Positions 15,577-40,407 of a DNA stretch of 64,000 bases are shown here, in pieces. The position numbers and the translations under genes were made by a program. The notes beneath the pieces are model-generated. The model searched no databases and was not told the origin of the DNA. It saw only the letters and a program-made list of their open reading frames with translations. This stretch comes from Anaeramoeba ignava BMAN (lineage: Eukaryota; Protista; Anaeramoebae): assembly GCA_028826165.1 (NCBI GenBank), contig JAPDFW010000098.1, positions 113,173-177,172 on the forward strand. Direction: 5' to 3'. How positions within the stretch are numbered: position 1 is the first letter of the stretch; each line of letters starts with the position of its first letter.

Positions 15577-17331
15577 ATGAATGATTGTTTATTTTTTGGT
15601 TATAATTATTTTCCAATTCTTTTAATAAATAAACCATATAAAATAACAAAACCAATTCAATTTAAATTTGAAAATGAAAATGAAAATGAAAATGAAAATG
15701 AAAAACAAATTAAACAAATTTCATCAGGTTATTTTGGAACAATTTTCCTTTTTGAAAATGGAAAAGCAATAGAATATTTAAATGAAAATGATTCAAATCA
15801 AAATCCTGAAAAAATCCAAATTGAAAATATTCAAAAAATAACTGTTGGTGATCGAAGTGAATCTATTTTAACAAAAGAAGGAAATGTATTTGCCAAAGGA
15901 AGATATATTAATCCAAATAATTCAAAAGAATTTATCAATATTTCATTATTAATTGAAGATAAAAATGATAGAATAATTGAAGATATTGCTTCTGGAAGAT
16001 ATTCAATTTACTTATTAACTTTAAATCAAAATGCTTATGGAATTGGTTCAAATCAAGATGGTCAAATTGGTTTTGATTCTAAAACACTTTCAAAAACAGA
16101 AAAACCAATTTTAATGATGAAAAATGTTTCTAAAATATTTTCAGGAATTGCTTCAACTCATGTTTTTCTTTTAAATTCAAATCAAGAATTATTTGGATGT
16201 GGATTTAATCAATATAGTCAACTTGGATTAGGAGAATCAAGAGAAGAAAGAAAAATACAAAAATTAACCCAAATCCAAAATATTCCAAAAGGCAAAATAA
16301 TTGATATTCAATGTGGAGAATATCATTCAATAATGTTGATTGAAAATGAAGATGAAAATCAAAATCAAAATCAAAATCCAAAAAGAAAACTTTATTCATG
16401 TGGATCTTGGAAATATAATGGACTTGACCAAAATCAAAATACTTATGAATTTACTGAAATCGAATCACCTTTATTTGAAAATGATGAAGATATTCTTGAA
16501 ATTTCTGTTGGAAATTCTCATACTTTGATTTTAACATCTAATTCAAAATTAATTGGATTTGGATATAATAGATATGGTCAATTAGGAACTGGAAATACAG
16601 AAGAACAATTAATTCCAATTCAAATTGAACTTCCTAAATTAAGATTTAATGAAAATATTTCTAATTATCATATTTCTTGTGGAGTTTCTAAATCATTTCT
16701 TTATTATTCTCCTCTTTCTTTTTCAAATCTTGAAGAAGATTTGATAAAATTATTTGAAAGAAAAGAATTTTGTGATATTTCATTTAAAACAGAAAATGGA
16801 GAAATAATTGAAGCTCATAAATTAATATTAAAATATAGATTAAATCAAAATCAAAATGAAATTGAAAAACTTCAAGAAATTATTTCAAATAAATCAATTA
16901 AAGAATCAAATCAAATATTTGAAATGATTTATTCAAACAGAATAATAAATCCAAAATTATATTCTGAAATTAAAGAAATTATAAATTCCAATGAAAAAAT
17001 TGAAGAAACAATTAAAAGAATTTATTTAAATGAAAATGAAAAAGATTTTATAATTGAAAGAAAAGAAAAACAATATAAATTTCCTAAATTAATATTAATA
17101 ATGAGAAGTGAATTATATCGAGGAATGTTTTTATCTGTAATAAATGATACTTCTAATAAAGTTACAGATTATAGTGAATTAAGTAATAAATCATTTCAAT
17201 TATTAGAATATTGGATTTATTCAAATCAAATTAAAAATGGAATTCAAATTACACAAGAAATAATTGATGAAATTAAAATTGGAATTGATTATTTTCAATT
17301 AAATCAAAACAAAATCCAAAATTTATTTTGA
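15577..17331 (+). CDS. RCC1-repeat + BTB protein, paralog 1
   Basis: RCC1 motifs (G.N..GQLG, QCGEYHS, SVGNSHTL) followed by two BTB-like segments (FCDISFK...AHKLIL; KDFIIE...FPKLILIMRSELYRGMF). Intronless; last codons probably frameshifted. Confidence 0.92.
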   Translation: MNDCLFFGYNYFPILLINKPYKITKPIQFKFENENENENENEKQIKQISSGYFGTIFLFENGKAIEYLNENDSNQNPEKIQIENIQKITVGDRSESILTKEGNVFAKGRYINPNNSKEFINISLLIEDKNDRIIEDIASGRYSIYLLTLNQNAYGIGSNQDGQIGFDSKTLSKTEKPILMMKNVSKIFSGIASTHVFLLNSNQELFGCGFNQYSQLGLGESREERKIQKLTQIQNIPKGKIIDIQCGEYHSIMLIENEDENQNQNQNPKRKLYSCGSWKYNGLDQNQNTYEFTEIESPLFENDEDILEISVGNSHTLILTSNSKLIGFGYNRYGQLGTGNTEEQLIPIQIELPKLRFNENISNYHISCGVSKSFLYYSPLSFSNLEEDLIKLFERKEFCDISFKTENGEIIEAHKLILKYRLNQNQNEIEKLQEIISNKSIKESNQIFEMIYSNRIINPKLYSEIKEIINSNEKIEETIKRIYLNENEKDFIIERKEKQYKFPKLILIMRSELYRGMFLSVINDTSNKVTDYSELSNKSFQLLEYWIYSNQIKNGIQITQEIIDEIKIGIDYFQLNQNKIQNLF

Positions 17332-17494
17332 TTTATTCAAAATTAAAATTAAATTTAAAATTTCAAAATCAAAATTCAAAATTAAAATTAAATTTAAAAT
17401 TAAAATTAAAAATAAAAAAATTAAAATTAAAATTAAAATTAAAATTCCAAAAATTATTTTTAAAATTTTTCTTAAAATTTTAAAAAAAAATAAA

Positions 17495-19280
17495 ATGAAA
17501 TTTTTATTTTTCATTGCAGATTTCAAAAACCAAAATTTTTTCAAAAATAAACCAGAAAAAATAAGAAAGCCAATTCAATTTAAATTTGAAAATGAAAATG
17601 AAAATGAAAATAAAAATGAAAAACAAATTAAACAAATTTCATCAGGAAGTTATTCAATAATTTTCCTTTTTAAAAATGGAAAAGCAATAGAATATTTAAA
17701 AGAAAATGATTCAAAACAAAATCCTTCAAAAATCCAAATTGAAGAGAATATTCAAAAAGTAACTGTTGGTGATGATAATGTAGCTATTTTAACAAAAGAA
17801 GGAAATGTATTTGCCAAAGGAAAAGATATTAATCCAAATAATCCAGATCAATTTATCAATATTTCATTATTAATTGAAGATAAAAATGATAGAATAATTC
17901 AAGATATTGTTTCTGGAAGTAATTCAATTTATTTATTAACTTCAAATAAAAATGTTTATGGAATTGGTTCAAATCATTATGGTCAAATTGGTTTAGATTC
18001 TAAAACACTTAAAAAAACAGAAAAACCAATTTTAATGATGAAAAATGTTTCTAAAATATTTTCAGGAAATTCTTCATATCATGTTTTTCTTTTAAATTCA
18101 AATCAAGAATTATTTGGATGCGGATTTAATCAATATAGTCAAGTTGGATTAGGAAAATTAAAAGAAGAAAAAAAAATCCAAAAATTAACCAAAATACAAA
18201 ATATTCCAAAAGGCAAAATAATTGATATTCAATGTGGGTATAATTATTCAATAATGTTGATTGAAAATGAAAATCAAAATCAAAATCCAAAAAGAAAACT
18301 TTATTCATGTGGATCTTCTTATTATAATGGACTTGGCAAAAATGAAAATACTTATGAATTTACTGAAATCAAATCATCTTTATTTGAAAATGATGATAAT
18401 ATTATTGATTTTTCTGTTGGAAATGCTCATACTTTGATATTAACATCCAATTCAAAATTAATTGGATTTGGATGGAATGCTTGGGGTCAATTAGGAACTG
18501 GAGATACAACAGAATATCAATTTATTCCAATTCAAATTGAACTTCCTAAATTAAGATTTAATGAAAATATTTCTAATTATCATTTTTCTTGTGGAGTTTC
18601 TAAATCATTTCTTTATTATTCTCCTCTTTCTTTTTCCAATATTGAAGAAGATTTGATAAAATTATTTAGAAGAAAAGAATTTTGTGATATTTCATTTAAA
18701 ACCGAAAATGGAGAAATAATCTAAAGCTCATAAATTAATATTAAAATATAGATTAAATCAAAATCAAAATGAAATTGAAAAACTTCAAGAAATTATTTCA
18801 AAAAAATCAATTAAAGAATCAAATCAAATATTTGAAATGATTTATTCAAACAAAATAATAAATCCAAAATTATATTCTGAAATTAAAGAAATTATAAATT
18901 CAAATGAAAAAATTGAAGAAACAATGAAAAGAATTTATTTAATTGAAAATGAAAATGAAAAAGATTTTATAATTGAAAGAAAAGAAAAACAATATAAATT
19001 TCCAAAATTAATATTAATAATGAGAAGTGAATTATATCGAGGAATGTTTTTATCTGTAACAGAAGATACTTCTAATAAAGTTACAGATTATAGTGAATTA
19101 AGTAATAAATCATTTCAAATATTTGAATATTGGATTTATTCAAATCAAATTAAAGATGAAATTCAAATTACAAAAGAAATAATTGATGAAATTCAAATTG
19201 GAATTGATTATTTTCAATTAAATCAAACAAATCCAAATTTATTTGATTTATTAATTAAAAAATTTAATAATCAAAATTAA
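17495..19280 (+). CDS. RCC1-repeat + BTB protein, paralog 2 (aberrant 5' end, frameshift near 18721)
   Basis: ORFs 17495-18724 and 18837-19280 are colinear with the other paralogs; 'ataatctaaagctcat' has one extra base versus 'ataatcaaagctcat'. Confidence 0.85.
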
Positions 19281-19590: not shown

Positions 19591-19614
19591 AAAATTTTTT
19601 TTTCATTCCAAATT

Positions 19615-22600
19615 TTAATCTTCTTTATTTAAATACCAAATCTCATTAATTTTTCTACCATTTGGATCAAATCCAAAATTTAAATTTAAATTTAAATTCA
19701 AATCTAAATTTAAATAATTATCACTCAAAACATAATAAATCTTTCGAAAACCTGAAATCAAATCCATTAAATTTGAATCACCTAATTCTTTTGCATCTGG
19801 TAAAATATCATTCAAACCATTTTTTACAATCAACATTGCAATTTCGATTGTTTGTGAAGTAATCCAATCTTTTTGCATATCAAGTAATCTGCTTATAATT
19901 GAAACAAATTTTTGATTTTTGGATTGAAAATTTTTGTTTGAAATTTCATTCAATGATTTGTTTTCAACAGAAGAAAGAAGAAAAAGAAGTTTTCGTTTTG
20001 CAATTGAATAACAATCCAAAATGTAGAATAAATCAAACACATTTAATGGTTCAATCGATAAAAATAGTTTCTCAACAAAACCATCAACTTGGAAATTAAA
20101 AAATGTCAAAACCCGAATTGATTTAAATTCAAAACTCTTCAAATCATAACTAAATTTGAAATTCAAGTTTTTTAAATCATTTGAATATTTTTCCACATAT
20201 TTCAATGTTGGTTGAGAAACAAAAGGAGAAAGTAATTTTGATTGAAACAAAGAAAACCGAATATGAAATAATCGAGGATCATGCTGTGGGAACTCTATCT
20301 TTGTAAATTCATGGAAAAAAGTAATACAAGGAAAGAGTGGCTTTGATCTTGATAAATGCGAACAAACAACTCCATAATATTTTCCATCAATAATAACCTC
20401 CATTGAATCGCGAGAAGCGTTATAGATTATAAAAATACTTGATCGTGGTTTGGAAAACTGAGGACAGAATGGAATTGTTTTATTATATACTATTGAATGG
20501 CCATCGTCTCTAATTCCACAAGAACCTTTCATCTCACCAACTATATTTGGAGTCTTATTTTTTCGTGAAATTCCAATTGCAATATTGTGAGTGAATTGAT
20601 GATTTTGTGTTATATTCATTTCCCAAATATGAATTCCTTTGTCGGGAAAAGGAAACATTGAGTATATTGTCAGAAAGTTTGATCCAATGCTTTTTGGAAT
20701 TATTACAGTGTTTTTTTTCGTAAATTGAACCATAAAATCCTCCATTTCAAACTCAAATATTGGATTAAACACTTGAATCCCTTCATTTGATCTTTGCCAA
20801 ATATCAAATGGAATTTTGTTATCTGCATACATTTCCATTTGGCTTTTGTATAAACTTCCAACTACTTGATTGATGATTTTTGTTCTTTTTGATTGAATGA
20901 ATTGAATTTTTGATTTTTGTGTTGAATAAACAAATTTTTGATTTGGAAAGGCAATCCTTGATGAAATTCCTTCTTTCGCCTTTTTCTTCATTATTACTTC
21001 TGGTTTTAAAATGTGTGTCTTTCTTTTTTCTTCTCTTAAATGATCGTAATCAAACTCAAAATGAATTTGTTTAAAATTCTCATCTTCATCTTTTCCAAAA
21101 AAATCTCCATCTTTCATTTGATAATATTTAGGTCCTTTATCAAATGAAGGTTCTGGTTTTTTAACTTGAGCTTGATCTTCATCTTGATCTTCATCCAATA
21201 AATTATATTTTTTTTGAGAAACTTGATTTTTTGTTGTTTTTGGTTTTTTTTTTGATTGAAAAAAACTTTTCCCAATTTTTGTTCCCAATCTTTTTGTTTT
21301 GAGAGATCTGGATGATTTGCGGAAAAAATTTGCAGATTTTGCTAAATCTTCACTTTTATCAATTAAAACTTCCAATTTTTCTTCTCTTGATAAAGATTTC
21401 TAAATTTTGTTTTGTTTTCATTTTCATTTTCAATTAAAAATTTTTTTTCAAAATGAATTAAAAATATACTTCTATATTTCGATGAATAGTTGATTTAGCT
21501 TCATTCACTCTTCGTTGTGTCTATTAAAAAAAAAATGGAACAAAAAGAAAAAAAAAATTTTTTTTTTGGGAATAAATTTAATATTCTTACTTTTTTTGTT
21601 GAATTATCTATTGATAATATTTGGTCTCTTTGTGCTGCGAGTTCATTTAAAACAGATCTTCCAATCTCCTCAGTTTGTTCAGATAGAAGATATGAATGTT
21701 GAAGTGATTCTTCTGTAATTGATAAAGAGATTGATTTCATTCTAAGAATAGATTCTAAAAAATGATAAAATTAAATGAATAAATAAATTTTTTTTTTTTG
21801 ATTTGTTTTCAAACCATTTATCTTATCTAATTCTGCATCTTGATCTCGAATTAGTTTGTTTTGAGCTTCTAAAATTTTTGAAATGTCTGAAGTTGAAGAT
21901 AATTTTTCAGGAAATGAAATTGGAGAATCTGAAACATTATTGAAATTTTTTTTGAAATTAGAAAGACTTGAATCAATTTGTTTCTTTTTTTGGAAAATTT
22001 TTTGTAACAAATTAACAGAATTTCTTGCTTCTAACAACAAATTTTGATAGTTATTTTTATCGAAAAACTTTGTGATTAAAATGGGAAGAAAATTGTGGAC
22101 ATTTTTAAATAAAGAATTTGGATGAAGTAAATTAAAACTGAGCAAAGTATTGTGATTGTAAACTTGCTGATTAAGTTGAAAGAAGCAATTATTTAAAAGG
22201 TGGAAAGATAATTCTGGGTTGAATAAAGGACCTGTAGCAAGAAATAGCATTGAATATGAATCGTTTTGTTGGAACAAAGAATATTCAGTGCATTTCATAA
22301 ATTTTTGGAATCCTGGTTTATTACTGGATGATTTAACTTCATTTTGAATTACAATATCTATTGCCCATTGGTGAGGGTCGTTTTGAGCTGGAAATTTAGC
22401 GAGAATAGTTCGATCAAAAGATCTTGCAATTGCGAAATATTTAAAAGTATTAAGATCCACAATTTTGCCATCATTTGTCAACATTTCTGTTCTTGTTACT
22501 GGATGAAATGCTACATTAAGTATGAATCCTGCGAATGTGATAATTGCGGAAATATTCATTAAAAGAAATATTGCGAATATTGATTTATTTAAACTTGATT

Positions 22601-23514: not shown

Positions 23515-23676
23515 TTTCTAAATTTTGTAAAAAAAAAGAAAAATGAAAAAATTTTTTGAAAACGTTTTTTCTTCCACTTTTTTTTCTTTTTCAAAATTAC
23601 AATTAAAATTACAATTAAAATTAAAATTACAATTAAAATTCCAAAATTATTTTTTTCATTTTTTTCTTTTTCAAAA

Positions 23677-25455
23677 ATGAATGATTGTTTATTTTTTGGA
23701 AGAAATCAAAATCCAATTCTTATCAAAAATGAACCAAATTCAATGAAAAACCCAATTCAATTTAAATTTGAAAATGAAAATGAAAATGAAAAACAAATTA
23801 AACAAATTTCATCAGGAAGTTTTTCAACAATTTTCCTTTTTGAAAATGGAAAAGCAATAGAATATTTAAATGAAAATGATTCAAATCAAAATCCTGAAAA
23901 AATCCAAATTGAAGAAAATATTCAAAAAGTAACTGTTGGTTATCAAAACGAAGCTATTTTAACAATAGAAGGAAATGTATTTGCCAAAGGAAAAGATATT
24001 AATCCAAATAATCTAAAAGAATTTATCAATATTTCATTATTAATTGAAGATAAAAATGATAGAATAATTCAAGATATTGTTTCTGGAAGATTTTCAATTT
24101 ACTTATTAACTTTAAATCAAAATGCTTATGGAATTGGTTCAAATGAATATGGTCAACTTGGTTTAGATTCTAAAACACTTCCAAAAACAGAAAAACCAAT
24201 TTTAATGATGAAAAATGTTTCTAAAATATTTTCAGGAAATTCTTCATATCATGTTTTTCTTTTAAATTCAAATCAAGAATTATTTGGATGTGGTGCTAAT
24301 AGAGATGGTCAACTTGGATTAGGAAAATCAAGAAAAAGAGAAACAGAAATCCAAAAATTAACCAAAATCCAAAATATTCCAAAAGGTAAAACAATTGATA
24401 TTCAATGTGGAGATTCTCATTCAATAATGTTGATTGAAAATCAAAATCAAAATCAAAATCCAAAAAGAAAACTTTATTCATGTGGATATTGGATATATAA
24501 TGGACTTGGCAAAAGATTTGGAGAAGATACTTATGAATTTACTGAAATCAAATCATCTTTATTTGAAAATGATGATATTATTCTTGAAATTTCTGTTGGA
24601 AATGCTCATAGTTTGATTTTAACTTCTAATTCAAAATTAATTGGATTTGGATATAATTCATATGGTCAATTAGGAATTGGAGATATATATTTTTTTCGAT
24701 TAATTCCAATTCAAATTGAACTTCCTAAATTAAGATTTAATGAAAATATTTTCAATTATCATATTTCTTGTGGAGATTACAAATCATTTCTTTATTATTC
24801 TCCTTTTTCTTTTTCCAATCTTGAAGAAGATTTGATAAAATTATTTAGAAGAAAAGAATTTTGCAATATTTCATTTAAAACCAAAAATGGAGAAATAATT
24901 GAAGCTCATAAATTAATATTGAAATATAGATTAAATCAAAATCAAAATGAAATTGAAAAACTTCAAGAAATTATTTCAAAAAAATCAATTAAAGAATCAA
25001 ATCAAATATTTGAAATGATTTATTCAAATAATTCCATAATAAATCTAAAATTATATTCTGAAATTAAAGAAATTATAAATTCTAATGAAAAAATTGAAGA
25101 AACAATTAAAAGAATTTATTTAAATGAAAATGAAAAAGATTTTATAATTGAAAGAAAAGAAAAAGAATATAAATTTCCTAAATTAATATTAATAATGAGA
25201 AGTGAATTATATCGAGGAATGTTTTTATCTGTAACAGAAGATAAATCTAATAAAGTTACAGATTATAGTGAATTAAGTGATAAATCATTCCAAATATTTG
25301 AATATTGGATTTATTCAAATCAAATTAAAGATGAAATTCAAATTACACAAGAAATAATTGATGAAATTCAAATTGGAATTGATTATTTTCAATTAAATCA
25401 AACAAATCCAAATTTATTTGATTTATTAATTAATAAATTTAATAATCAAAATTAA
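23677..25455 (+). CDS. RCC1-repeat + BTB protein, paralog 3 (intact, 592 aa)
   Basis: Complete intronless ORF colinear with the other paralogs. Confidence 0.95.
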   Translation: MNDCLFFGRNQNPILIKNEPNSMKNPIQFKFENENENEKQIKQISSGSFSTIFLFENGKAIEYLNENDSNQNPEKIQIEENIQKVTVGYQNEAILTIEGNVFAKGKDINPNNLKEFINISLLIEDKNDRIIQDIVSGRFSIYLLTLNQNAYGIGSNEYGQLGLDSKTLPKTEKPILMMKNVSKIFSGNSSYHVFLLNSNQELFGCGANRDGQLGLGKSRKRETEIQKLTKIQNIPKGKTIDIQCGDSHSIMLIENQNQNQNPKRKLYSCGYWIYNGLGKRFGEDTYEFTEIKSSLFENDDIILEISVGNAHSLILTSNSKLIGFGYNSYGQLGIGDIYFFRLIPIQIELPKLRFNENIFNYHISCGDYKSFLYYSPFSFSNLEEDLIKLFRRKEFCNISFKTKNGEIIEAHKLILKYRLNQNQNEIEKLQEIISKKSIKESNQIFEMIYSNNSIINLKLYSEIKEIINSNEKIEETIKRIYLNENEKDFIIERKEKEYKFPKLILIMRSELYRGMFLSVTEDKSNKVTDYSELSDKSFQIFEYWIYSNQIKDEIQITQEIIDEIQIGIDYFQLNQTNPNLFDLLINKFNNQN

Positions 25456-27728: not shown

Positions 27729-29181
27729 TTAACAACAATTAGATTTAGAATTAGAATTAGAATTAGAATTAGATTTAGAATTAGATTTAGATTTAGATTT
27801 AAATTTAGAAGATTTTGGATCACAAAGATTTAAAGGAATTTTATGGATTGCATTATCAAAATTTTGAACAATAACGTTAGTTAAAGAAGCACCAGATTCT
27901 TGAATTTTAATTTGATTTTTTGCAGAAATTGAAAAATAAGCTAAAAAATCATTTTTTTGAGCGTATTCTTGAAGATCTACAAGGACTTTGTTCTTTAAAT
28001 CGCATTTATTTCCTAGTAAAACTGCTGGTATTTTTTCTCCGTTTAATTGAGTTTTTTCATCTAATTCATTTTTCCAAAATTTAACATTTTCGAATGTTTT
28101 TCTTTTGTTAACATCGAAAACAACAAATGCTCCTGATGCTCCTCTATAAAATTGTGAAGTAACTGATCTAAAATTTGGATTACCTGCAATATCTACAATT
28201 TTAATTTTAATATTAATTTTAATTTTAATTTTGATTTTAATTTAATTTTAAATTATAATTTAAATTTGATTTTTAATTTTAATTTTAATTTTGATTTTAA
28301 TTTTAATTTTAATTTTAATTTAAATTTTGATTTTGATTTTAATTTTAATTTTAATTTGAATTTTAATTTTAATTTAAATTTTGATTTTGATTTTAATTTT
28401 AATTTTAATTTGAATTTTAATTTTAATATTGATTTTGATTTTAATTTTAATATTAATTTTAATATTAATTTTAAATTTTGATTTTAATTTTAATTATAAT
28501 TTTAATTTTAATTTTAATTTTAATTTTGATTTTAAATTAATTTTAATTTTAATTTTGATTTTAATTTTGATTTTAATTTTAATTTTAATTTTAATTTTTA
28601 ATTTTAATTTTAATTTGATTTTTAATTTTAATTTTAATTTTAATATTGATTTTTAATATTAATTTTGATTTTTAATTTTGATTTTAATTTTGATTTTAAT
28701 TTTTGATTTTAATTTTAAATTAATTTTTGATTTTTAATTTTAATTTTAATTTTGATTTTAATTTTAATATTAATTTTGATTTTAATTTTAAATTAATTTT
28801 GATTTTAAATTGATTTTGATTTTAAATTGAATGTTATTTTTATTTTGTGGAATTTTTGATCTTTTATTTAATTTGAGAAATTTTTAAATAGATCTCTTTT
28901 ATAAATTTATTCTTAAAACAATTAAAAAATAAAAATAAAAATTTCTTATTTTTTTTTTGACTTTTTTTTTTTTCTTAATAATATTTTAATTTCTAAAAAA
29001 AAATACCCCAATATTGAATTTGAATTGTATTTTCATTAATTTGTGTTGTTTTCATTCTAAAATCAACACCAATAGTATTTTTTTCATGAATATCAAATTT
29101 TTCTCCAGTTAATCTTTTTACAAAACTTGTTTTTCCAACTCCTGGATCTCCAATAACGATTACTTTATAAAGAAATTCCAT
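27729..29181 (-). CDS. Rab GTPase, Rab32/38/29-like, two exons
   Basis: GDPGVGKTS, TIGVDF, W|DIAGNPNF, FYRGASGAFVVFDV, WKNELDEK, LLGNKCDL, SAK, terminal CC. Intron 28193-29006 (phase 1). Confidence 0.88.
28193..28830. repeat. Intronic (TTTRAT)n microsatellite
   Basis: tttaat/tttgat repeats fill most of the Rab intron. Confidence 0.9.
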
Positions 29182-29361: not shown

Positions 29362-31116
29362 TTAATTCGAAAAAATAGATAATAAATCAGAACTTAAAAA
29401 AGAAAAATACAATTTGGATTGAATCTCAAATGTTTGCATATCTTGATTGGGTTGATTTTGAATTAAAGGTTTAATTGAGGAATTTTTGAAATCAATCAAT
29501 TTTTTTTTTGGAAATTTAATTTTTTCAAAAATAGAATTTGAATCAATATCATAAATTTCTATTAAGTTTTTATTTTGTTCTGAAATGGCAACTAATCGAC
29601 GATTATTCTTTAAAAAGATATGAGAACTTAAAACTGTAGAATTTTGATCGAGTTTTTTCATCCAAATATTTGAATTTTGCTGATAATTTTCATTCAGATC
29701 AAAAACTTGGAGTTGAGTTGAATTTTGAAAGTGAATTGTAGTTAAAAAAAGAGAAGAATTGGGAAGTGCCTTTATATTTGAGCACTCACCAGTTAATGGA
29801 AGAAGAATATTTTCGAATTGAAGATCTGGCTTTTTTCTAGAAAACAATAAACCTAATTTTGTTCCGATTAAAATTCCTTGATTTTCTTCATTTTGTTCTT
29901 GATTTAAGGAAATGCAAGAAAGAGAATGAACCGGCGAATTAAACCCTGTATGAATTGTAGTTAAAGGTTTTGCGAGGTTTCTGGTATCGAAGAGACTCAC
30001 ATCTCCATTTTCTTTTCCGCAATAAAAAACTGTCGAATTTGGATCGAAACAACATGAAAAAATTTTTTCATCACTTTCAAATCCAAAAATTTGTTGATTT
30101 GATTTTGCGCTTGTTAATTTAATCCATTTGTCTTGGGAAACAGTAAGAACGAGTTCGTTTTTGCATTTTAAATCCTCAATTTTGCAACTGTGAAGAGGAA
30201 TAAAGCGAATACTTTCAAGATTTTCTTGATCAATTTGAACAATTCCAAAATTTTGAAATCGTTGTTGAGCCACAAAGAAGGAATTATTGTATGAACAAAA
30301 GTCATGGATATTGGAAGATAATATTGTGCGTGAATCGATAAAGTTGAAATTATTGAAAAACGCATATGGATTTTTAGTTGGAGATTTGAGGTCATGAATG
30401 CATAAAAAATTTCTCTGGAAATTTTGGCTTGGTTGTTGGCTGCTCCGAATATTCCAAGGAGAAGCTGTGCAGAGCATGTTTGTGTTGTTGTTATTTCCTG
30501 CAAAAGATATATTTGATTTTAAATTGTTTAATGGCTTCAATATCCATTTTGATGGAGAATTAAATTTTTGGAAAATTCCGTTATTTTTTTCAAATTTTTT
30601 ATTTTTTCTATAATTTTCTAAAAATGAATCCAATTCTTTTTCCTTGTTTTCCAAATTGAGTTTTTCTTTTGTCAATTTTTCAATATTATTTTCCAGCTCC
30701 TTAATTTTAAGATCAAGATCCTTTAATTCATTTTGGAAATCAAGTTTAATTTTCTGATTTTTTTGGAAAATATTTTTATCGAAAGAGAAAGTTTGATTTG
30801 GATAAATTTTCCAAATTTCTCTTTGATTTGCTCTTTTATTGCACATGGGACATTTTTTTCTTCTGCTTGGACATTTCTGGAGATATTCTTTAATACATTT
30901 TCTGCCAAAAGAATGCCCACAACTCAAAGAACATAGTTCATGTTCACCTTTCATTGTGCAAACTTGAGAACATAAAGAACAATAAAAAGCGTTTTTTTGT
31001 TTTTGAGTTTGTGATAATGTTTGTTTATCAATTTCAATAACATTTTGATTTGAATCTTCAATAAGATCTTGGTCCATTTCTTTTTTACGTTTTTTATTAT
31101 TTTTTTTTGATTTCAT
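29362..31116 (-). CDS. RFWD3: RING finger - coiled coil - WD40 E3 ligase, RFWD3-like
   Basis: CSLC...GEHELCSLSCGHSFGRKCI...KCPMCNKRA...IWKIY fits the RFWD3 RING signature; followed by a coiled coil and WD40 (IPLH..KIEDL, SCCFD, VSLFDTR). Confidence 0.85.
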   Translation of the reverse strand: MKSKKNNKKRKKEMDQDLIEDSNQNVIEIDKQTLSQTQKQKNAFYCSLCSQVCTMKGEHELCSLSCGHSFGRKCIKEYLQKCPSRRKKCPMCNKRANQREIWKIYPNQTFSFDKNIFQKNQKIKLDFQNELKDLDLKIKELENNIEKLTKEKLNLENKEKELDSFLENYRKNKKFEKNNGIFQKFNSPSKWILKPLNNLKSNISFAGNNNNTNMLCTASPWNIRSSQQPSQNFQRNFLCIHDLKSPTKNPYAFFNNFNFIDSRTILSSNIHDFCSYNNSFFVAQQRFQNFGIVQIDQENLESIRFIPLHSCKIEDLKCKNELVLTVSQDKWIKLTSAKSNQQIFGFESDEKIFSCCFDPNSTVFYCGKENGDVSLFDTRNLAKPLTTIHTGFNSPVHSLSCISLNQEQNEENQGILIGTKLGLLFSRKKPDLQFENILLPLTGECSNIKALPNSSLFLTTIHFQNSTQLQVFDLNENYQQNSNIWMKKLDQNSTVLSSHIFLKNNRRLVAISEQNKNLIEIYDIDSNSIFEKIKFPKKKLIDFKNSSIKPLIQNQPNQDMQTFEIQSKLYFSFLSSDLLSIFSN

Positions 31117-31184
31117 ATTTACAAAAATAAAAGAAAAATAAAAGAAAAAGAAAAAAATGAATTTTAATTTTGGATTTTAATTTT

Positions 31185-31862
31185 GATTTAAAAAAGGAAA
31201 AATCGGACATTTCTCAATTTAATTTTAATTTTGGATTTTATTTTAAAAAGAAAAAATCGGATATTTCTCATTTTAATTTTAATTTTAATTTTGGATTTTG
31301 ATTTAAAAAAGGAAAAATCGGACATTTTTTAATTTTAATTTTTATTTTTATTTTTGATTTAAAAAAGAAAAAATCGGATATTTCTTATTTTTATTTTTAA
31401 TTTTAATTTAAAAAAGAAAAAATCGGATATTTCTCAATTTAATTTATTTTAATTTTGATTTAAAAAAGGAAAAATCGGATATTTCTCAATTTAATTTTAA
31501 TTTTAATTTTGGATTTTGATTTAAAAAAGGAAAAATCGGATATTTCTCATTTTAATTTTAATTTAAAAAAGAAAAAATCGGACATTTTTTAATTTAATTT
31601 TATTTTTAATTTTAATTTAAAAAAGGAAAAATTGGATATTTCTCAATTTAATTTTAATTTTGGATTTTAATTTAAAAAAGGAAAAATCGGATATTTCTCA
31701 TTTTTATTTTTAATTTTGGATTTTATTTTAAAAAAGGAAAAATTGGATATTTCTTATTTTATTTTAATTTTAATTTTAATTTAAAAAAGAAAAAATCGGA
31801 TATTTCTTATTTTAATTTTAATTTTAGTTTTAAAAAGAAAAAATCGGATATTTCTCAATTTA
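31185..31862. repeat. Array of ~13 copies of AAAAAG(G/A)AAAAATCGGATATTTCT separated by variable TTTAAT-like spacers
   Basis: Motif recurs about every 40-60 bp from ~31193 to ~31850. Confidence 0.9.
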
Positions 31863-31948
31863 ATTTTTGATTTGATTTTATTTTTATTTTAATTTTATTT
31901 TGATTTTATTTTTGATTTGAATTTGAATTTGAAAAAGAAAAATTTTGA

Positions 31949-34233
31949 TTAAAAATCTGCTTTTAATTTTTTTGGTGATTCTTGATTCCTTTTAACAATT
32001 CTTGATACTATAACAGTTATAAATCCTATTCCAATTAAAATTATTAAACCTCCTAATTCAGCATTAAAGCAATCCATATGTAAAAATTTGCAATCATCAT
32101 TTTCATAAGTAATTCCTTTTCCTGATTCACAAGCAGTTGGACAAACAATACAATCACAATTATCTTCACAATTTTGTATTTGATCCATTGGACAAAATGC
32201 ATTTGGATCATCATCATCTTTTATATATATATATATTTTTTGAAAAAGAAAAAAAGTGTCAAAAAAATTTCCCAAAAAGAAAAAAAATTTTTTTTTTACC
32301 ATCAGTATAAACAAATAAAACTTCATTAGGAATTGCTTGTTGTCCTTGTGTTATCCAAAATGCTTCGTATGTTGGCCACATTGATTGAACAAAATGAACC
32401 CATTTACATGAATCATAAACTGCTTTTGCCCAATCTCGGCAAACTGTAAAATTTGGTAAAATTAATGGTTCTCCATCTACTTGATTTTGAGTTGTAATAT
32501 AATTTCCTAATTTAAAACAATTTTTTAATATTAAATATTAAATATTAAATTGAATATTGAATTAAATTAAATAGAATTGAATTGAATTGAATTGAATATT
32601 GAATTGAATTGAATATTGAATTGAATTGAATTGAATATTAAATATTAAATATTAAATTCAATATTGAATTGAATTGAATTAAATTGAATTGAATTGAATT
32701 GAATATTGAATTGAATTGAATTAAATTGAATTGAATTGAATATTGAATTGAATGAATTGAAATTGAATTGAAATTAAATTGAATTGAAATTGAATTGGAA
32801 TGAATATGAATATTGAATTGAATTGAATTGAATTGAATTGGAATTGAATATTAAATATTAAAATTGAATATTGAATTGAATTGAATTGAATTGAATTGGA
32901 ATTGAAATTGAATTGAATATTGGTGAAATTGAATTGGAATTGAATTAAATAGTATTAAATATTAAAATTGAAATTAAATAATAAAATTAAATATTGAATG
33001 AATTGAATATTGAATATTGAATATTGAATTGAATAAATATGAAATATTGAATATTGAATTAAATATTAAAATTAAATTGAATTGAATTAAATTAAATTAA
33101 ATATTAAAATATTGAATTGAAATATTGAATATTAAATATTAAAATTGAATAATCAAATATTAAATGAATTGAAATGAATTGGAGTGAAAATTGGAGTGAA
33201 AATATTGAATATTGAATTGAATTGAAATGAATTGAATTGAAATGAATTGAATTGAATATTGAATTGAATATTAAATATTGAATTGAATTGAATTGAATAT
33301 TGAATTGAATATTGAATTGAAATATGAATAAAAATATTGGAATTGAATATTGAATTGAATGGTGAATTGAATTGAATTGAATTAAATTGAATTGAATTAA
33401 ATTGGAATTGAATTGGTGGGAATGGAATAAATTGAAATATTGGAATTGAATTGAATTGAATTGAATATTAAATATTGAAAAATATTGAATATGAATTGAA
33501 TATTGAATATTGATTGAATTGAAATTGAAATGATTGAATGGAATTGAATTGAATTGAATTGAATTGAATTGAATTAAATTTAAATTAAAAATTAAATTAA
33601 AATTGAATTGAAATTGAATTGAATTGAATTAAATTGAATTAAATTGAATTGAGTTGAATATTGAATTGAATTAAATATTGAATTAAATTGAATTGAGTTG
33701 AATTAAATATTAAATTAAATTGAATTGAGTTGAATATTGAATTGAATTAAATTGAATTAAATATTGAATTGAATTGAATATTGAATATTAAATATTAAAT
33801 TGAATTAAATTGAATATTGAATTGAATTATTGAATATTTATTGATTTAAAAATTAAATTATTGAATATTGAATTAAATTAAATTGAGTTATTGAAAGTTA
33901 AATACCTTGTTCAGGAGAGCAAGTATATCCACACCAAGTGAAATATAAGTTATTAATACAAGCAGGACAAGAACCAAAAAAATTAACAGCAGTTTGGAAA
34001 TTATTTTTAAAGAAAGCTGCTTGAGAATCATTACAACAAGCTGTATGATTATATAAATCTTGATAAGGTTCACAAGCTAAACCAGTTAAATTGATATTAA
34101 TTGGAGGATGTTTCCATACAACTGGTGGATGACCTTGAAGTGCACAAATATCTTCTACTCCTAAAACCTTATTATTCTCATTTATAATTACTATTATTAT
34201 TAACGTAAATATTATTTTTGTATAATTTTTCAT
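31949..34233 (-). CDS. Stand-alone NPC1 N-terminal (sterol-binding) domain protein with signal peptide and one C-terminal TM
   Basis: ACCNDSQ...FGSCPACINNLYFTWCGYTCSPEQG|NYI...WAKAVYDSCKWV...CDCIVCPTAC follows the NPC1-NTD cysteine pattern. Introns 32507-33905 and 32218-32299 (both phase 1). TM LGGLIILIGIGFITVIV, short tail, stop. Confidence 0.85.
32525..33895. repeat. Intronic (TTGAA/TTGAATA)n satellite, ~1.4 kb
   Basis: Degenerate attga pentamer repeats fill the intron. Confidence 0.9.
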
Positions 34234-34419
34234 TTCTTTCTTATTTCTTATTTATTCTTTATTAAAAAATTTGAAAAGAAATTAAAAATTAAAAATTAAA
34301 AATCAAATTTTTATTTTTATTTTTTTTTTTAGATTAAATTTTTTGTCAATTTTATGATCTTTTTGTCTTATTAATTTTTTTTTTATTTATTTCTTTATTA
34401 AATTTTTTATTTAATTTTT

Positions 34420-35380
34420 CAATTAAATTTAATTAAGATTTATTTATAATTTTTTAATTAAGATTAATTTTATAATTTATTTATAATTTATTTATAATTT
34501 TTCAATTAAATTTAATTTATAATTTTTATCCGATTTATTTATAATTAATTTTATATTAAATTTATAATTTATTTCAATTAATTAAATTTAATTTATAATT
34601 TTTATCCGATTTTTTATATTAAATTTTAATTTATAATTTTTTATAATTTTTATATTAAATTTAATTTATAATTAATTTATAATTTTTATCCGATTTTTAT
34701 ATTAAATTTAATTTATAATTTTTATATAATTTTTATATTAAATTTAATTTATATTTAATTTACAATTTTTTATAATTTTTATTTAAATTTAATTATAATT
34801 TATTTATAATTTTTATCCGATTTTTATATTAAATTATAAGAAATTAAATTTAATTTATAATTTAAATTTATAATTTTTATCCGATTTTAAATTAAATTTA
34901 ATTTATAATTTATTTTATAATTTTTTATATTAAATTTAATTTATAATTTTTATAATTTTTATCCGATTTTTATATTAAATTTATATTTTTATTTAAATTT
35001 TTATTTATAATTTTTATATTAAATTTAATTTATAATTTATTTAATTAATTTAATTTTTATATTTTTATATATAATTTTTTATATTAAATTTTATTTATAA
35101 TTTTTATATATTTAATTTATAATTTTTTATCCGATTTTATATTAAATTTAATTTATAATTTTTAAATTTTTATATTAAATTTAATTTATAATTTTTTATA
35201 ATTTATAATTTTTATCCGATTTTTATATTAAATTTAATTTATAATTTTTATATAATTTATTTATAATTTTATATTAAATTTAATTTATAATTTATTTATA
35301 ATTTTTATCCGATTTTTATATTAAATTTTATATATAATTTTATATATAATTTTTATATAATTTTTATATTAAATTTAATT
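34420..35380. repeat. AT-only repeat array punctuated by ~9 copies of TATCCGATTT
   Basis: Motif at about 34527, 34604, 34687, 34814, 34878, 34960, 35128, 35213 and 35306. Confidence 0.85.
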
Positions 35381-35493
35381 GAAATTATTATTTCGAATTG
35401 TGTTTAATTCCTTTCATCAAATTTTGTTGAAAAAAAGAAAATTATTTAAAAAAAAAAATCTTTTTTTGAAAATTCCTTTTTTTGAAAAGTAAA

Positions 35494-37740
35494 TTAAAGT
35501 AAAATAAAATCATCATCATCATCATCATCCTTCTTTGAATCAATATTCTCATTATTCTTACTCTGATCTTTCTCCTTCAAATTCTCCTCGTGAATGGTCA
35601 TTTCATTAACATAATTCTCAAGCATCTTCTCAACATTTTTATGCAAAAGATCCAAACCAGTCAAATTTTCCAAAAAAGAAGGTTCATTAAAAACTTTCAG
35701 CAAAAAATCAAATCCACCTTCATGATAAGCATTTCTAACAATAGAAGAGCAAGCAACACACTTAGAAAAAGGGGAGCTCGAAACAAGAAAATTATCGAAA
35801 GAAGAAAGATACCCCCTAATTTGATGGGGGACATAACCAAGTGGTGATTTAACTTCTTGGGGGGACTCTTTTGTATCTGATAAAGCAAACCATTTTTGAG
35901 GATGATGCAGAATGCTCACAAGCAGCTCAACACCAAGAGAACCAGCAATGGGACTTAGCGCAGGACGCGTGACAGTGCACTGCATATCGAGAGTGCGGTC
36001 TGATATCGAATCAATGGGCGCAACAACGTCCTGACAGAAATAACAAGCATGGGTCATCGGCGATTTGGGATGCACTCCGCCATCAGACTCGCCTTCAGGA
36101 ACGCCATGGCGCATGACAAAGTAATTTGCAAACCCAAGCGCGATGTCGATGACAGGCTTCCCATGATACGCACAGAGCATTGAGGGCAACCAGCGGGATT
36201 CGCGGGTGTCTGTCATCAAAAACACAACATCGTGATCCTTAATCAAATTTTCGATCTCTTCAACAGACTTTTTTGTGGCTTCAATCTCGCGGGAAGTAAC
36301 AACATGACCGGGCATAGGGATCATAATAACATGACCCGAAGACTTAACACTTGGGAAAATTCGGGACAATTGTTCCCCGGCAACGGTCGCTTTATAACGG
36401 CCGTTGGAAACATGAGAATCCTCAAAAGTATACAACCACTGGCGCACTGGATTTGAATAGGAAACACGCCCGCCATCTACAAAGGTAATGTGCCGAAATC
36501 CCCAGCCGAGCAGAGCGCGACCCACAACACACCCAAGAGTTCCTGCCCCGATCAAAAGACATTTTGTGCGCGAAATGATCTCAAGGTCGAGCTCAGGAAG
36601 CAGCCGCCATCTCATCAACTGGAGATTCAAATTGACTGCAGACTCGGCAAGTTTCTCAGGAGACATCAGTCCGCTCAGATCCACAAGTCGCGGCGCTAAC
36701 TTTCCTTTCGTGTTTTTTTCCCAGCCACTTGACTCAAACACGCATTCTTGTCCCTCCTTCAGATTTTTTCCAGAAACATCCTCGACAACAGGCACTTGCA
36801 AATCAAGCACAAAGCTGTTCTTGATGTCCGAGTTCGATGGGTCTTCCCTTATACACACAACCTTCAGTCGCGAAACAGCAAAGCGCACCGAGATTAAGGC
36901 CAAAATATTTCTCAACGGCCATCCCGGCACAAAAGATACCCCCGAAGGGTCAATAAACCCCACAATATACTCAATATCCTCACTCTCCTCTTTCTTATTC
37001 TCCTCTTTTTCTTTCCCCCAAAAAGTATTCCATTCACTTAATTTTCCAACGGAAATTGCGTCCTCTTCTTTTTCCTTTGTTTTCTTAATCAAAAACACGT
37101 TCAAATTGCCTGTTTTGCCAGTCGAAATTTTATCTTCATCACTCTCCAAATCCGGCTCTCTTAGCCTGAGCAGGGATCCATAAAGCGCTTCAATTTGCTT
37201 TTCGGAAAAAAACTTGTCAATCATAACTGGGGGTTCTTTATGGGAAATAAGATCGCCGTTTTTGCTTTTCAAAATAAGCGCTGGGAACGCGAACCAATAG
37301 TAAAAAATATACTTCTTCAGATCAGCATAAGTCAGCAAAAGAAACCTTCCGAGGCGAGAGGTATCCTCAAGAGCCTCACCGTTTACTATGTCTTGCCAAA
37401 TCAAATTTGCAGTGTTTTTGAACAGTTGGATTTTATCGAGATTTTTGTATTCTTTCATTGTATTCGTGTTCAATATTGTTCCTGGCGCCATAAAAGAAAA
37501 CGGCGCAAGATGTTTGTATTCTTTTTGGCTGTAATCTGCATACTCAAAAGAGTTCATGTTCAGCCAGAACTGTGTCGGGAAATCTGGTTCATATTTTGCT
37601 CGATAAGTTCCAAATATTGTTTTTTCTGAATTGTCAAGTTTCCATTCGTTTAGTTTCGTTTTTGTTAGTGTAGACCAGAATATTGGCTCAACAATCGATG
37701 AGAATGGTTGATATACAACAAGGTTTTTTTTTGATGTCAT
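35494..37740 (-). CDS. ATG7: Autophagy E1-like enzyme ATG7, intronless
   Basis: ADLKKY.FYYWFAFPAL, FIDPS...PGWPLRN, AVNLNLQLMRWRLLP, LLIGAGTLGC, VSYSNPVRQ, DTRESRWLP, ACYFCQD, catalytic DRTLDMQCTVTRP, VPHQIRG. Confidence 0.98.
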   Translation of the reverse strand: MTSKKNLVVYQPFSSIVEPIFWSTLTKTKLNEWKLDNSEKTIFGTYRAKYEPDFPTQFWLNMNSFEYADYSQKEYKHLAPFSFMAPGTILNTNTMKEYKNLDKIQLFKNTANLIWQDIVNGEALEDTSRLGRFLLLTYADLKKYIFYYWFAFPALILKSKNGDLISHKEPPVMIDKFFSEKQIEALYGSLLRLREPDLESDEDKISTGKTGNLNVFLIKKTKEKEEDAISVGKLSEWNTFWGKEKEENKKEESEDIEYIVGFIDPSGVSFVPGWPLRNILALISVRFAVSRLKVVCIREDPSNSDIKNSFVLDLQVPVVEDVSGKNLKEGQECVFESSGWEKNTKGKLAPRLVDLSGLMSPEKLAESAVNLNLQLMRWRLLPELDLEIISRTKCLLIGAGTLGCVVGRALLGWGFRHITFVDGGRVSYSNPVRQWLYTFEDSHVSNGRYKATVAGEQLSRIFPSVKSSGHVIMIPMPGHVVTSREIEATKKSVEEIENLIKDHDVVFLMTDTRESRWLPSMLCAYHGKPVIDIALGFANYFVMRHGVPEGESDGGVHPKSPMTHACYFCQDVVAPIDSISDRTLDMQCTVTRPALSPIAGSLGVELLVSILHHPQKWFALSDTKESPQEVKSPLGYVPHQIRGYLSSFDNFLVSSSPFSKCVACSSIVRNAYHEGGFDFLLKVFNEPSFLENLTGLDLLHKNVEKMLENYVNEMTIHEENLKEKDQSKNNENIDSKKDDDDDDDFILL

Positions 37741-37779
37741 TTAATTGAGTGAGAAAAAAAATGAAAAATGAAAAAAATA

Positions 37780-38608
37780 ATTTTAATTTTGATTTTAATT
37801 TTAATTTTAATTTTAATTTTAATTTTAATTTTCAATTTTAATTTTAATTTTAATTTTAATTTTAATTTTAATTTTAATTTTAATTTTAATTTTAATTTTA
37901 ATTTTTAATTTTAATTTTAATTTTAATTTTAATTTTAATTTTAATTTTAATTTTAATTTTAATTTTAATTTTAATTTTAATTTTAATTTTAATTTTTGAT
38001 TTTAATTTTAATTTTTAATTTTAATTTTAATTTTGATTTTAATTTTAATTTTAATTTTAATTTTGATTTTAATTTTAATTTTAATTTTAATTTTAATTTT
38101 GATTTTAATTTTAATTTTTAATTTTTAATTTTGATTTTAATTTTAATTTTAATTTTGATTTTAATTTTGATTTTAATTTTTAATTTTAATTTTAATTTTA
38201 ATTTTAATTTTAATTTTAATTTTAATTTTAATTTTAATTTTAATTTTAATTTTAATTTTTAATTTTAATTTTAATTTTAATTTTAATTTTAAATTTTAAT
38301 TTTAATTTTAATTTTAATTTTAATTTTGATTTTAATTTTAATTTTAATTTTAATTTTAATTTTAATTTTAATTTTAATTTTAATTTTGATTTTAATTTTA
38401 ATTTTAATTTTAATTTTAATTTTAATTTTAATTTTAATTTTGATTTTAATTTTAATTTTAATTTTAATTTTGATTTTGATTTTAATTTTAATTTTAATTT
38501 TAATTTTGATTTTGATTTTAATTTTAATTTTGATTTTAATTTTAATTTTAATTTTGATTTTGATTTTGATTTTTAATTTGAAATTGATTTTAATTTTGAT
38601 TTTTAAAT
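37780..38608. repeat. (TTTRAT)n microsatellite, ~830 bp
   Basis: Reverse complement of (AAAATY)n, starting at the 3' end of the minus-strand RCC1-BTB gene. Confidence 0.95.
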
Positions 38609-40407
38609 TTAATTTTCATTTTGATTATTAAATTTATTAATTAATAAATCAAATAAATTTGGATTTGTTTGATTTAATTGAAAATAATCAATTCCAATTT
38701 GAATTTCATCAATCATTTCTTGTGTAATTTGAATTTCATCTTTAATTTGATTTGAATAAATCCAATATTCAAATATTTGAAATGATTTATTACTTAATTC
38801 ACTATAATCTGTAACTTTATTTGATTTATCTTCAGTTACAGATAAAAACATTCCTCGATATAATTCACTTCTCATTATTAATATTAATTTAGGAAATTTA
38901 TATTGTTTTTCTTTTCTTTCAATTATAAAATCTTTTTCATTTTCATTTTCATTTTCATTTAAATAAATTCTTTTCATTGTTTCTTCAATTTTTTCATTTG
39001 AATTTATAATTTCTTTAATTTCAAAATATAATTTTGGATTTATTATTCTGTTTGAATAAATCATTTCAAATATTTGATTTGATTCTTTAATTGATTTTTT
39101 TGAAATAATTTCTTTAAGTTTTTCAATTTCATTTTCATTTTGATTTTGATTTAATCTATATTTCAATATTAATTTATGAGCTTTGATTATTTCTCCATTT
39201 TTGGTTTTAAATGAAATATCACAAAATTCTTTTCTTCTAAATAGTTTTATCAAATCTTCTTCAAGATTGGAAAAAGAAGGAGAATAATAAAGAAATGATT
39301 TAGAAACTCCACAAGAAATATGATAATTATAAATATTTTCATTAAATCTTAATTTAGGAAGTTCAATTTGAAATGGAATTAATTGATACCAAGATGTATC
39401 TTCAGTTCCTAATTGACCATAACCATTATCTCCAAATCCAATTAATTTTGAATTAGAAGTTAAAATCAAAGTATGAGCATTTCCAACAGAAATTTCAAGA
39501 ATATTATCATCATTTTCAAATAAAGATGATTTGATTTCAGTAAATTCATTTGTATATTTATCTCCTTTGCCAAGTCCATTATATATCCAATATCCACATG
39601 AATAAAGTTTTCTTTTTGGATTTTGATTTTCATTTTCATTTCAACCAACATTATTGAATGATAATTTCCACATTGAATATCAATTATTTTACCTTTTGGA
39701 ATATTTTGGATTTTGGTTAATTTTTGGATTTTTGTTTCTTCTTCTCTTGATTCTCCTAATCCAAGTTGACCAGATATATTATCACCACATCCAAATAATT
39801 CTTGATTTGAATTTAAAAGAAAAACATGTTTTGAAGAATTTCCTGAAAATATTTTAGAAACATTTTTCATCATTAAAATTGGTTTTTCTGTTTTTTTAAG
39901 TGTTTCAGAATCAAAACCAAGTTGACCATATTCATTTGAACCAATTCCATAAGCATTTTGATTTGAAGTTAATAAGTAAATTAAATTATTTCCAGAAACA
40001 ATATCTTCAATTATTCTATCATTTGTATCTTCAATTAATGATGAAATATTGATAAATTCATTTGTATTTTTTGGATTAATATCTTTTCCTTTGGCAAATA
40101 CATTTCCTTCTATTGTTAAAATAGCTTCATTATTATAACCAACAGTTACTTTTTGAATATTTTTAATTTGGATTTTTGAAGGATTTTGATTTGAATCATT
40201 TTCATTTAAATATTCTATTGCTTTTCCATTTTCAAAAAGGAAAATTGTTCCAAAATTTGATGATGAAATTTGTTTAATTTGTTTTTCATTTTCATTTTCA
40301 TTTTCATTTTCAAATTTAAATTTAATTGTTTTTGTTATTATTTTATTTGTTTCATTTTTGATAAGAATTGGATATTGATTTTGACCAAAAAATAAACAAT
40401 CATTCAT
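38609..40407 (-). CDS. RCC1-repeat + BTB protein, paralog 5 (frameshift near 39640)
   Basis: ORFs 39466-40458 and 38609-39469 join through a 1-bp shift in the EN repeat; ATG of MNDCLFFG at 40407. Confidence 0.88.

Follow-up and report, generated by a model that had tools for sequence, protein, structure and literature searches.

Introduction

The MATH-BTB and F-box families of nematodes and grasses are adaptively evolving cullin adaptors, encoded by lineage-specific tandem expansions, for which a role in innate immunity has been proposed (Thomas 2006, Genome Res 16:1017, as cited in PMC12951971 and PMC4091423), and in Podospora anserina the HNWD genes (het-d, het-e and het-r) encode propellers that undergo concerted evolution together with diversifying selection at a few face positions per repeat (PMC1805685). 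Here we report a family that resembles both, starting from five genes at positions 15577-40407 of a 64,000-nucleotide stretch of the Anaeramoeba ignava BMAN genome (assembly GCA_028826165.1, contig JAPDFW010000098.1, C99 in our numbering, positions 113,173 to 177,172 of the forward strand). This whole stretch is called the window, and gene coordinates below are positions in it. Each gene encodes an RCC1-like beta-propeller followed by two BTB domains, and the hypervariable residues of the genome-wide family lie on one face of the propeller. On balance, we favour reading this RCC1-BTB family as a germline-encoded repertoire of binding proteins that is wired through its BTB tail, most likely to Cullin-3 (Cul3) ubiquitination.

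The MATH-BTB and F-box families share with the A. ignava family the pairing of a conserved docking-type domain with a fast-evolving binding domain in a lineage-specific tandem expansion. The same signature was found here, namely an expansion specific to A. ignava in which the ratio of nonsynonymous to synonymous change (omega, dN/dS) exceeds 1 only on the propeller face and is 0.39 in the BTB half. Unlike those families, the A. ignava family varies in an RCC1 domain and not in MATH or FTH, carries two tandem BTB domains, is much larger (~1,150-1,340 copies) and more uniform (84% identity), and has a Cul3 docking that is putative; its host, in contrast to nematodes and grasses, is a free-living anaerobic protist. 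Like HNWD, it is a beta-propeller scaffold that combines concerted evolution with diversifying selection on the interaction face. However, in HNWD the exchange takes place between WD repeats in and among ~10 NOD-like receptor (NLR)-type genes with NACHT and HET domains, whereas in A. ignava whole genes are the units, and the copies have an RCC1 fold and a BTB-BTB constant part in which Pfam found no NACHT or HET domain. The resemblance to HNWD is evolutionary and is not one of membership.

By domain order (RCC1 repeats, then BTB) and by annotation names, the family also recalls animal RCBTB1, RCBTB2 and IBTK, and many copies carry the PANTHER name 'BTK-binding protein-related', but in animals these are conserved single-copy genes. 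Two BTB domains are present in IBTK as well. In sequence and in fold, the propeller is best matched by UVR8 and RCC1 (PDB 4dnw, 4d9s, 1a12 and 1i2m), yet positions that UVR8 conserves for one function are the most variable ones in the A. ignava family, which in addition carries the BTB-BTB tail. As an analogy only, the constant framework and the one-surface variable loops, rich in Tyr, Trp, Asp, Asn and Ser, are reminiscent of antibodies and variable lymphocyte receptors (VLRs); unlike in those, the diversity of A. ignava is germline and held in separate genes, with no sign that genes are rearranged somatically or mutated in a targeted way. Among known systems, the MATH-BTB/F-box adaptors and HNWD come closest; the A. 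ignava family differs from them in its RCC1 scaffold, tandem-BTB tail, scale and uniformity, and in its host.

The amoeba A. ignava lives anaerobically and houses sulfate-reducing Desulfobacteraceae in a symbiosome, and its published genome is 80.65% A+T with 15,022 predicted proteins (PMC11550330). The assembly, of 42.8 Mb in 147 contigs, was built from R9.4 Nanopore reads with ABruijn, Racon, Nanopolish and two Pilon rounds using bowtie2-mapped 150-bp reads (PMC11550330), and the window (20% G+C) is eukaryotic nuclear DNA of this organism. Large Rab and TBC expansions are described in the genome paper; BTB, RCC1 and ubiquitin do not occur in its main text, and the accessible parts of its supplements hold no count of an RCC1-BTB family (PMC11550330).

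Results

Five RCC1-BTB-BTB genes lie in the window

Three of the five window genes are intact and two carry one frame break each. Paralog 1 (P1; 15577-17331, + strand) was identified by its open reading frame (ORF) and Pfam matches (RCC1, RCC1_2, RCC1-like domain and BTB) and has no frame-breaking indels relative to paralog 3; its longest ORF begins at 15547 and the conserved family start MNDCLFFG is at 15577. Paralog 3 (P3; 23677-25455, + strand) and paralog 4 (P4; 25716-27518, + strand), both identified by ORF and Pfam, stand in tandem, with P4 260 bp downstream of P3 and 86% identical to it in protein sequence. Pfam matched PF00415 (E ~1e-25) and PF13540 (E ~1e-24) in all three intact copies. 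Paralog 2 (P2; 17495-19280, + strand), delimited by alignment to P3, is split into ORFs at 17495-18724 and 18837-19280 by a 1-nt insertion relative to P3 and an in-frame TAA at ~18721-18724; its N-terminus has diverged, and from its sequence this copy is probably a pseudogene. Paralog 5 (P5; 38609-40410, - strand), delimited from split ORFs, alignment and translation of the downstream frame, has lost a single nucleotide from an A-run at ~39641, beyond which the shifted frame is open, and this break may be either a homopolymer assembly error or the mark of a very recent pseudogene. A 24-mer from the BTB module occurred exactly five times in the window against 0 expected. An earlier note on this DNA had quoted ten loop motifs for the five paralogs, and all of them were found as written in the ORF translations, with P5 read in the frame after its break; they include, for paralogs 1-5 in order, TVG[DRS/DDN/YQN/YFN/YNN], GSN[QD/HY/EY/EV/EY]GQ and SCG[SWK/SSY/YWI/NYQ/YWI]Y.

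Hypervariable positions lie in the propeller and the BTB half is constant

The main alignment held 70 intact genomic copies, with a pairwise protein identity of 0.844 +/- 0.013 and a nucleotide identity of 91.5%, and columns with an entropy of at least 2 bits were defined as hypervariable. The earlier note had proposed a constant framework and BTB half, with variation at the same loop positions of each blade, and the entropy profile bears this out: all 36 hypervariable columns fell within residues 9-368, in the propeller, whereas the BTB half had none and a mean entropy of 0.18 bits versus 0.63 bits in the propeller, so that BTB halves as variable as the loops, the pattern that the note had held contrary to its proposal, were not what was found. 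The profile was replicated in 56 other copies taken from annotated proteins (Pearson r = 0.958), with 36 of 38 hypervariable residues in common, and the pattern lies well outside what chance would give. In P3, in which residue r corresponds to nucleotide 23677+3(r-1), the hypervariable residues are 9-12, 21-22, 48, 65, 89-90, 106, 138-139, 157-158, 169, 189-191, 207-210, 223-224, 246-247, 271-274, 282-284, 309-310, 326-329, 338-342 and 367-369.

Each of the main loops occurred in 36-57 distinct variants among the 70 copies, and the combined loop signature was unique in all 70. Tyr (4.4-fold) and Trp (7-fold), and also Asp, Arg, Ala and His, were enriched at the hypervariable sites, while Ile, Leu, Met, Gly and Pro were depleted. 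Relative to the expectation from base composition in this 80% A+T genome, Ile made up 2.5% of loop residues instead of 16-24%, and Tyr, Asp, Glu and Trp were in excess by 2- to 4-fold or more. Such a composition, far from the mutational expectation, indicates that the make-up of the loops is not neutral. Targeted mutagenesis of the diversity-generating retroelement (DGR) type, which would confine variation to adenine-templated positions in NNY-type codons, was rejected as a source of the variation on the codon pattern, since all three codon positions vary and TGG, AAA, GAA and CAA codons are common at the hypervariable sites; a template repeat and a reverse transcriptase were not searched for.

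The hypervariable loops share one face of a seven-bladed propeller

The AlphaFold2 model of P3 (predicted local distance difference test, pLDDT, 89.3) consists of a seven-bladed propeller, with seven s1-s2 hairpins, followed by a helical/BTB tail. Combining this model with the Foldseek and entropy results, the propeller was assigned to residues 1-375 (23677-24801, + strand), and with Pfam and a separate tail model the constant BTB-BTB tail was assigned to residues 376-592 (24802-25455, + strand, stop codon included). Foldseek searches with the propeller returned RPGR, HERC2, RCC1 and UVR8 with E values of 1e-21 to 5e-26 and target-normalised template modelling (TM) scores of 0.7-0.8.

Faces were assigned by the strand topology of the model, not by coordinates: in an antiparallel meander (s1-s2-s3-s4), one face (face X) carries the s1-s2 hairpin together with the loops that leave s3 and enter s4, and the opposite face (face Y) carries the s2-s3 and s4-s1 turns. 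By this assignment, 32 of the 37 residues with at least 2 bits lay in X loops and the other five were strand residues adjoining X loops, whereas none of the 74 Y-loop residues reached 2 bits (Fisher p = 5e-9). The earlier prediction that the variable sites would map to a single propeller face thus holds on the topology of the model. Hypervariable positions also align with UVR8 W233/R234, W285/R286 and W337/R338 (each pair standing between G and H) and with W94/D96, E43/D44 and D107. In UVR8 these residues form the interface of the dimer (PMC8748919), which indicates that the variable loops correspond to the protein-contact face of a related propeller.

Diversifying selection acts on the loops of this face

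dN and dS were estimated by pairwise Nei-Gojobori counting, which needs no tree; tree-based site models are unsuited to the family because linkage is lost within ~30 nt. Among the 70 copies, dN reached 0.85 in the hypervariable columns, while the low-entropy columns had a dN of 0.031 and a dS of 0.087 (omega 0.35) and the BTB half had a dN of 0.034 (omega 0.39). The framework and the BTB half are under purifying selection, with omega of 0.35-0.39. A split-sample design, in which columns were chosen on 35 copies and measured on the other 35, removes ascertainment bias, and it returned a dN of 0.84-0.90 in the chosen columns against a framework dS of 0.086-0.090. When residues were classed by structure only, omega was 1.83 in X loops (all 102 residues, invariant glycines included), 0.48 in Y loops and 0.80 in strands. 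Both the split sample and the structure-defined class agree with the positive selection that had been claimed for the loops, and the pattern held to speak against it, scattered sites with dN/dS of at most 1, was not observed, as the sites share one face and X loops exceed 1. Diversifying selection on a one-face repertoire is well supported.

Synonymous change was not uniform along the gene. Four-fold site diversity was 0.21 in the codon beside a hypervariable patch versus 0.05-0.07 elsewhere, and the local dS near patches was ~0.25, so that omega there is ~3, as against ~10 when framework dS is used. From this rise, part of the excess in the loops may reflect old or conversion-resistant islands and not selection alone. 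Carried further, the same observation would describe a neutral family, recently amplified and homogenised by conversion, whose loops are unconstrained or escape conversion without any diversifying selection, and the sharing of loop variants at only ~2x chance would suit such a history. We consider this very improbable, because loop dN is ~10x framework dS and ~3x local dS, split sample included, and because neither the omega of the structure-defined X class, nor the distance of the loop composition from mutational expectation, nor the purifying selection on framework and BTB half in a family in which ~90% of the best-scoring copies are open is expected of unconstrained sequence.

The framework is a mosaic consistent with gene conversion between paralogs

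In the 70 copies most four-fold sites were invariant (median diversity 0) and a few had a diversity near 0.5, which is not the pattern of independent divergence at a dS of ~0.09. A star-like burst with recurrent mutation was rejected as the source of low linkage on the same distribution, which is not uniformly ~0.09. Among 122 common biallelic framework sites, r2 was 0.18 below 10 nt and 0.015-0.018 beyond, reaching background past 10-30 nt, and all four gametes were present in 90-95% of site pairs (about 92%), the propeller half behaving as the BTB half does. Tandem neighbours were slightly more alike (0.85-0.91) than random pairs. The family acts like a recombining population, and this fits frequent short conversion tracts between paralogs, so that gene conversion, which the earlier note had proposed, is probable and appears as a mosaic framework. 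The patchwork of shared loop variants that it also described is weak evidence by itself: identical motifs of 2-4 residues are shared among copies at only ~2x the rate under independence, and the sharing shows no dependence on distance.

Part of the mosaic, or of the variability itself, might instead have been made in the assembling and polishing of a 1,000-copy family with noisy long reads and multi-mapping short reads. The R9.4 Nanopore data and the bowtie2/Pilon polishing (PMC11550330), together with the position of the P5 break in an A-run, are compatible with such errors. Mis-polishing, however, draws sites to the majority base and cannot yield 36-57 in-frame, one-face variants per loop, and polishing explains neither the contrast in dN/dS between domains nor the repetition of the profile in independent copies. 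Linkage is, moreover, as low in the propeller half as in the BTB half, although the loop patches of the propeller follow one another so closely that most 150-bp reads from it ought to be unique. We therefore regard an artefact as highly improbable.

The spacers between copies are (AAAATT)n arrays, and the same hexamer motif flanks family members genome-wide (consensus of the 250-bp flanks of 40 copies). These arrays are a possible substrate for unequal exchange. Carriage by a transposon was rejected on the 250-bp flanks of the 40 copies, which have nothing in common but (AAAATT)n and a T-rich run ahead of the ATG; no search was made for terminal repeats or transposase genes.

The family is large and specific to A. 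ignava

With up to two mismatches, a BTB2 24-mer had 1,336 matches genome-wide and a propeller 24-mer had 1,150, whereas the reversed controls had 0; the matches form arrays with a spacing of ~2 kb, and almost all contigs carry them. A six-frame genome search returned at least 74 candidates, the full-length ones 83-87% identical to P3 and seven of them with one in-frame TAA; the intact fraction given above refers to the best-scoring copies and the window copies. At least 700 annotated A. ignava proteins matched at E <= 1e-50, and the copies go under at least eight unrelated GenBank names, such as 'claret isoform a', 'btk-binding protein-related', 'regulator of chromosome condensation' and 'hypothetical'. 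In a representative library of 1.84 billion proteins, all of the closer relatives with the same architecture were from A. ignava, and the nearest A. flamelloides protein was a 1,590-aa multi-propeller + BTB protein of 34% identity, which indicates that the expansion is later than the split of both species. EukProt transcriptome entries included two more distant subfamily members. The family comprises ~1,150-1,340 copies, is specific to A. ignava, and is arranged mostly in tandem arrays.

Some A. ignava relatives (P0003, P0005, P0007 and P0009) have an N-terminal armadillo-repeat domain before the RCC1 propeller. In P0005, P0007 and P0009, which are 52-60% identical to the window family, a BTB domain follows the propeller; P0003 is 74% identical and had no BTB match at the cut-off used. 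A C-terminal CaaX-like box (e.g. CLIF) was present in 16 of 126 family members, and the window copies have N/Q-rich tails without the box. The motif suggests that the members bearing it are a prenylated, membrane-attached subset.

A possible Cullin-3 adaptor role of the BTB-BTB tail

The P3 tail comprises a shortened BTB1 (residues ~381-463) and a canonical BTB2 (~473-591) with V-T-E after helix alpha3; PF00651 matched residues 401-469 in P1 and 487-575 in P3. The tail model had a pLDDT of 91.4, and its best PDB match was the single-chain Miz1-BCL6 BTB heterodimer 4u2m, with further fold matches to the BTB domains of SPOP (solved with Cul3), KBTBD2/4, BCL6 and myoneurin. BTB2 resembled the SPOP BTB domain solved with Cul3, with a target-normalised TM score of 0.77. 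Judging from the model, BTB1 and BTB2 probably pair as an intrachain pseudo-dimer. An invariant MFLSVTED occurs in BTB2, and its V-T-E can be read as phi-x-E only if the loop is taken to be one residue shorter than its counterpart in KLHL3, where the motif is M83-S84-E85 (PMC3616122); BTB1 is without the motif. The last elements of the tail are two predicted helices (tail-model residues 183-195 and 205-216), which might correspond to a 3-box.

On the cullin side, a Cul3 ortholog gene was found on contig C58, with Cullin-3 as its best PDB match (4e-119 versus 2e-101 for Cul4). The gene is spliced, and its first exon was used alone, exons not being joined; this exon encodes SFEELYRSSY and keeps F54, Y58 and Y62 of helix H2, corresponding to the F, Y and Y residues of Cul3 H2 that contact BTB adaptors (PMC3616122). 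When the tail (376-592) and the exon-1 product were submitted together as a complex, the prediction gave no verdict (score 0.00, controls not run) and weighs neither way. Other cullins were rejected as the partner, four being Cul4-like and one Cul1/2-like, and not Cul3. The four Cul4-like genes are separate (contigs C64, C71, C74 and C109; loci L071, L072, L076 and L075), and a tandem pair of unclassified cullin-like genes lies on C57.

A less likely but serious alternative keeps the same binder repertoire and gives the tail another role, in which it would not recruit Cul3 but would oligomerise or dock elsewhere, or in which the propellers would regulate the expanded small GTPases or act as their exchange factors. 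RCC1-like domains include GTPase exchange factors, many copies are annotated 'claret' or 'RCC1-like G exchanging factor-like', and large Rab and TBC expansions are reported for Anaeramoeba (PMC11550330); Pfam found no BACK or 3-box domain in the copies, and in fold the tail comes closest to a BTB-BTB dimer of transcription-factor type. Matched housekeeping partners would not, however, predict a family of >1,000 members whose binding face has an omega above 1, and BTB2 shares its fold with SPOP/KBTBD adaptors solved with Cul3, the V-T-E is present, and Cul3 keeps its BTB-binding helix.

A candidate recognition repertoire

In the reading that we favour, each copy would give a cytosolic protein with a seven-bladed RCC1-like propeller and a nearly invariant BTB-BTB tail. 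Each blade has three hypervariable loops, in which Tyr, Trp, Asp, Asn, Ser and Arg abound, and all of these loops belong to one face; this face would bind diverse ligands, and the constant tail would join every member to one common partner, most likely a Cullin-3 RING ligase, by which bound targets would be ubiquitinated. Tandem duplication would make the copies, frequent short-tract gene conversion between paralogs would make their framework uniform, synonymous sites included, and diversifying selection would keep the face loops different. That the variable face binds ligands, that the partner is Cul3 and that the targets are foreign proteins (of virus, prey, pathogen or symbiont) is what we infer, and we regard the Cul3 and immunity parts as plausible.

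Several observations weigh against this reading. The usual adaptor geometry differs from the single-chain tandem-BTB pseudo-dimer of the window family; V-T-E is separated from helix alpha3 by one residue fewer than the KLHL3 motif is, and sister subfamilies have V-x-D; and the Pfam searches for BACK and 3-box came back negative, as given above. No EukProt transcriptome entries were among the 120 best database matches, and a frame break or stop interrupts two of the five copies in the window and seven of the 74 top-scoring matches in the genome. Synonymous change is raised directly beside the hypervariable patches as well, and, in a family this repetitive, polishing with 150-bp reads placed by bowtie2 (PMC11550330) may have mixed up framework polymorphisms and made the loss of linkage look greater than it is.

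A more specific form of the reading can be put forward tentatively. The family would be an intracellular system like immune receptors, in which >1,000 germline propellers with paratope-like faces all act through BTB-BTB on ubiquitination and their diversity is renewed by gene conversion between paralogs; it would be directed at viral, prey, pathogen or symbiont proteins, possibly policing the sulfate reducers of the symbiosome. Instead of defence or symbiont control, the repertoire could serve to tell self from conspecific non-self, in cell-fusion or mating incompatibility, or could reflect conflict within the genome, the closest evolutionary analogue, the Podospora HNWD/het-d/het-e propellers, being an allorecognition system (PMC1805685). 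This appears unlikely, as fusion incompatibility is not known from Anaeramoeba, >1,000 loci are far above known allorecognition systems (10 HNWD genes) and Pfam found no death or effector domain besides BTB.

If the repertoire reading is correct, the copies of one hypervariable recognition family would equal ~8-9% of the predicted protein count of A. ignava, and the family would, to our knowledge, be among the largest single recognition families in a microbial eukaryote. The RCC1 propeller would join the short list of natural scaffolds for diversified binding, a protist counterpart would be added to the adaptor expansions of nematodes and plants and to the propeller receptors of fungi, and a handle would be gained on how an amoeba with obligate bacterial partners separates friend, food and foe. 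Within a single gene, moreover, concerted evolution and diversifying selection act next to each other, which makes the family a clean natural example of the two together.

Neighbouring genes and repeats

Four unrelated genes were identified by Pfam within 15577-40407, encoding a SPRY protein, a membrane protein, an RFWD3-like RING-WD40 protein and ATG7. The SPRY-domain protein (19615-21375, - strand) and the RFWD3-like RING + WD40 E3 ligase (29362-31116, - strand) stand among the RCC1-BTB copies, and the ATG7 gene region lies at 35494-37740 (- strand). The ATG7 region has 38% G+C (bin 36001-38000) inside surroundings of 20% G+C, and long antisense ORFs at 36488-37183 and 37195-37629 are due to this high G+C.

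Tandem Repeats Finder detected an (AATTTT)108 hexamer microsatellite at 28197-28846 and a (TAATTT)n microsatellite of 141 units, assigned to no strand, at 37778-38636, which abuts the 3' end of P5; their motif is that of the spacers around family members elsewhere in the genome. Several complex A+T-rich minisatellites, with periods of 54, 5/74 and 36/237, lie at 31163-31867, 32530-33890 and 34379-35377 between the RFWD3-like gene and ATG7. A 15-bp tandem repeat at 40793-41571, with 52 copies of 93% identity, is open on both strands ('NLFQL...' and 'EINLI...').

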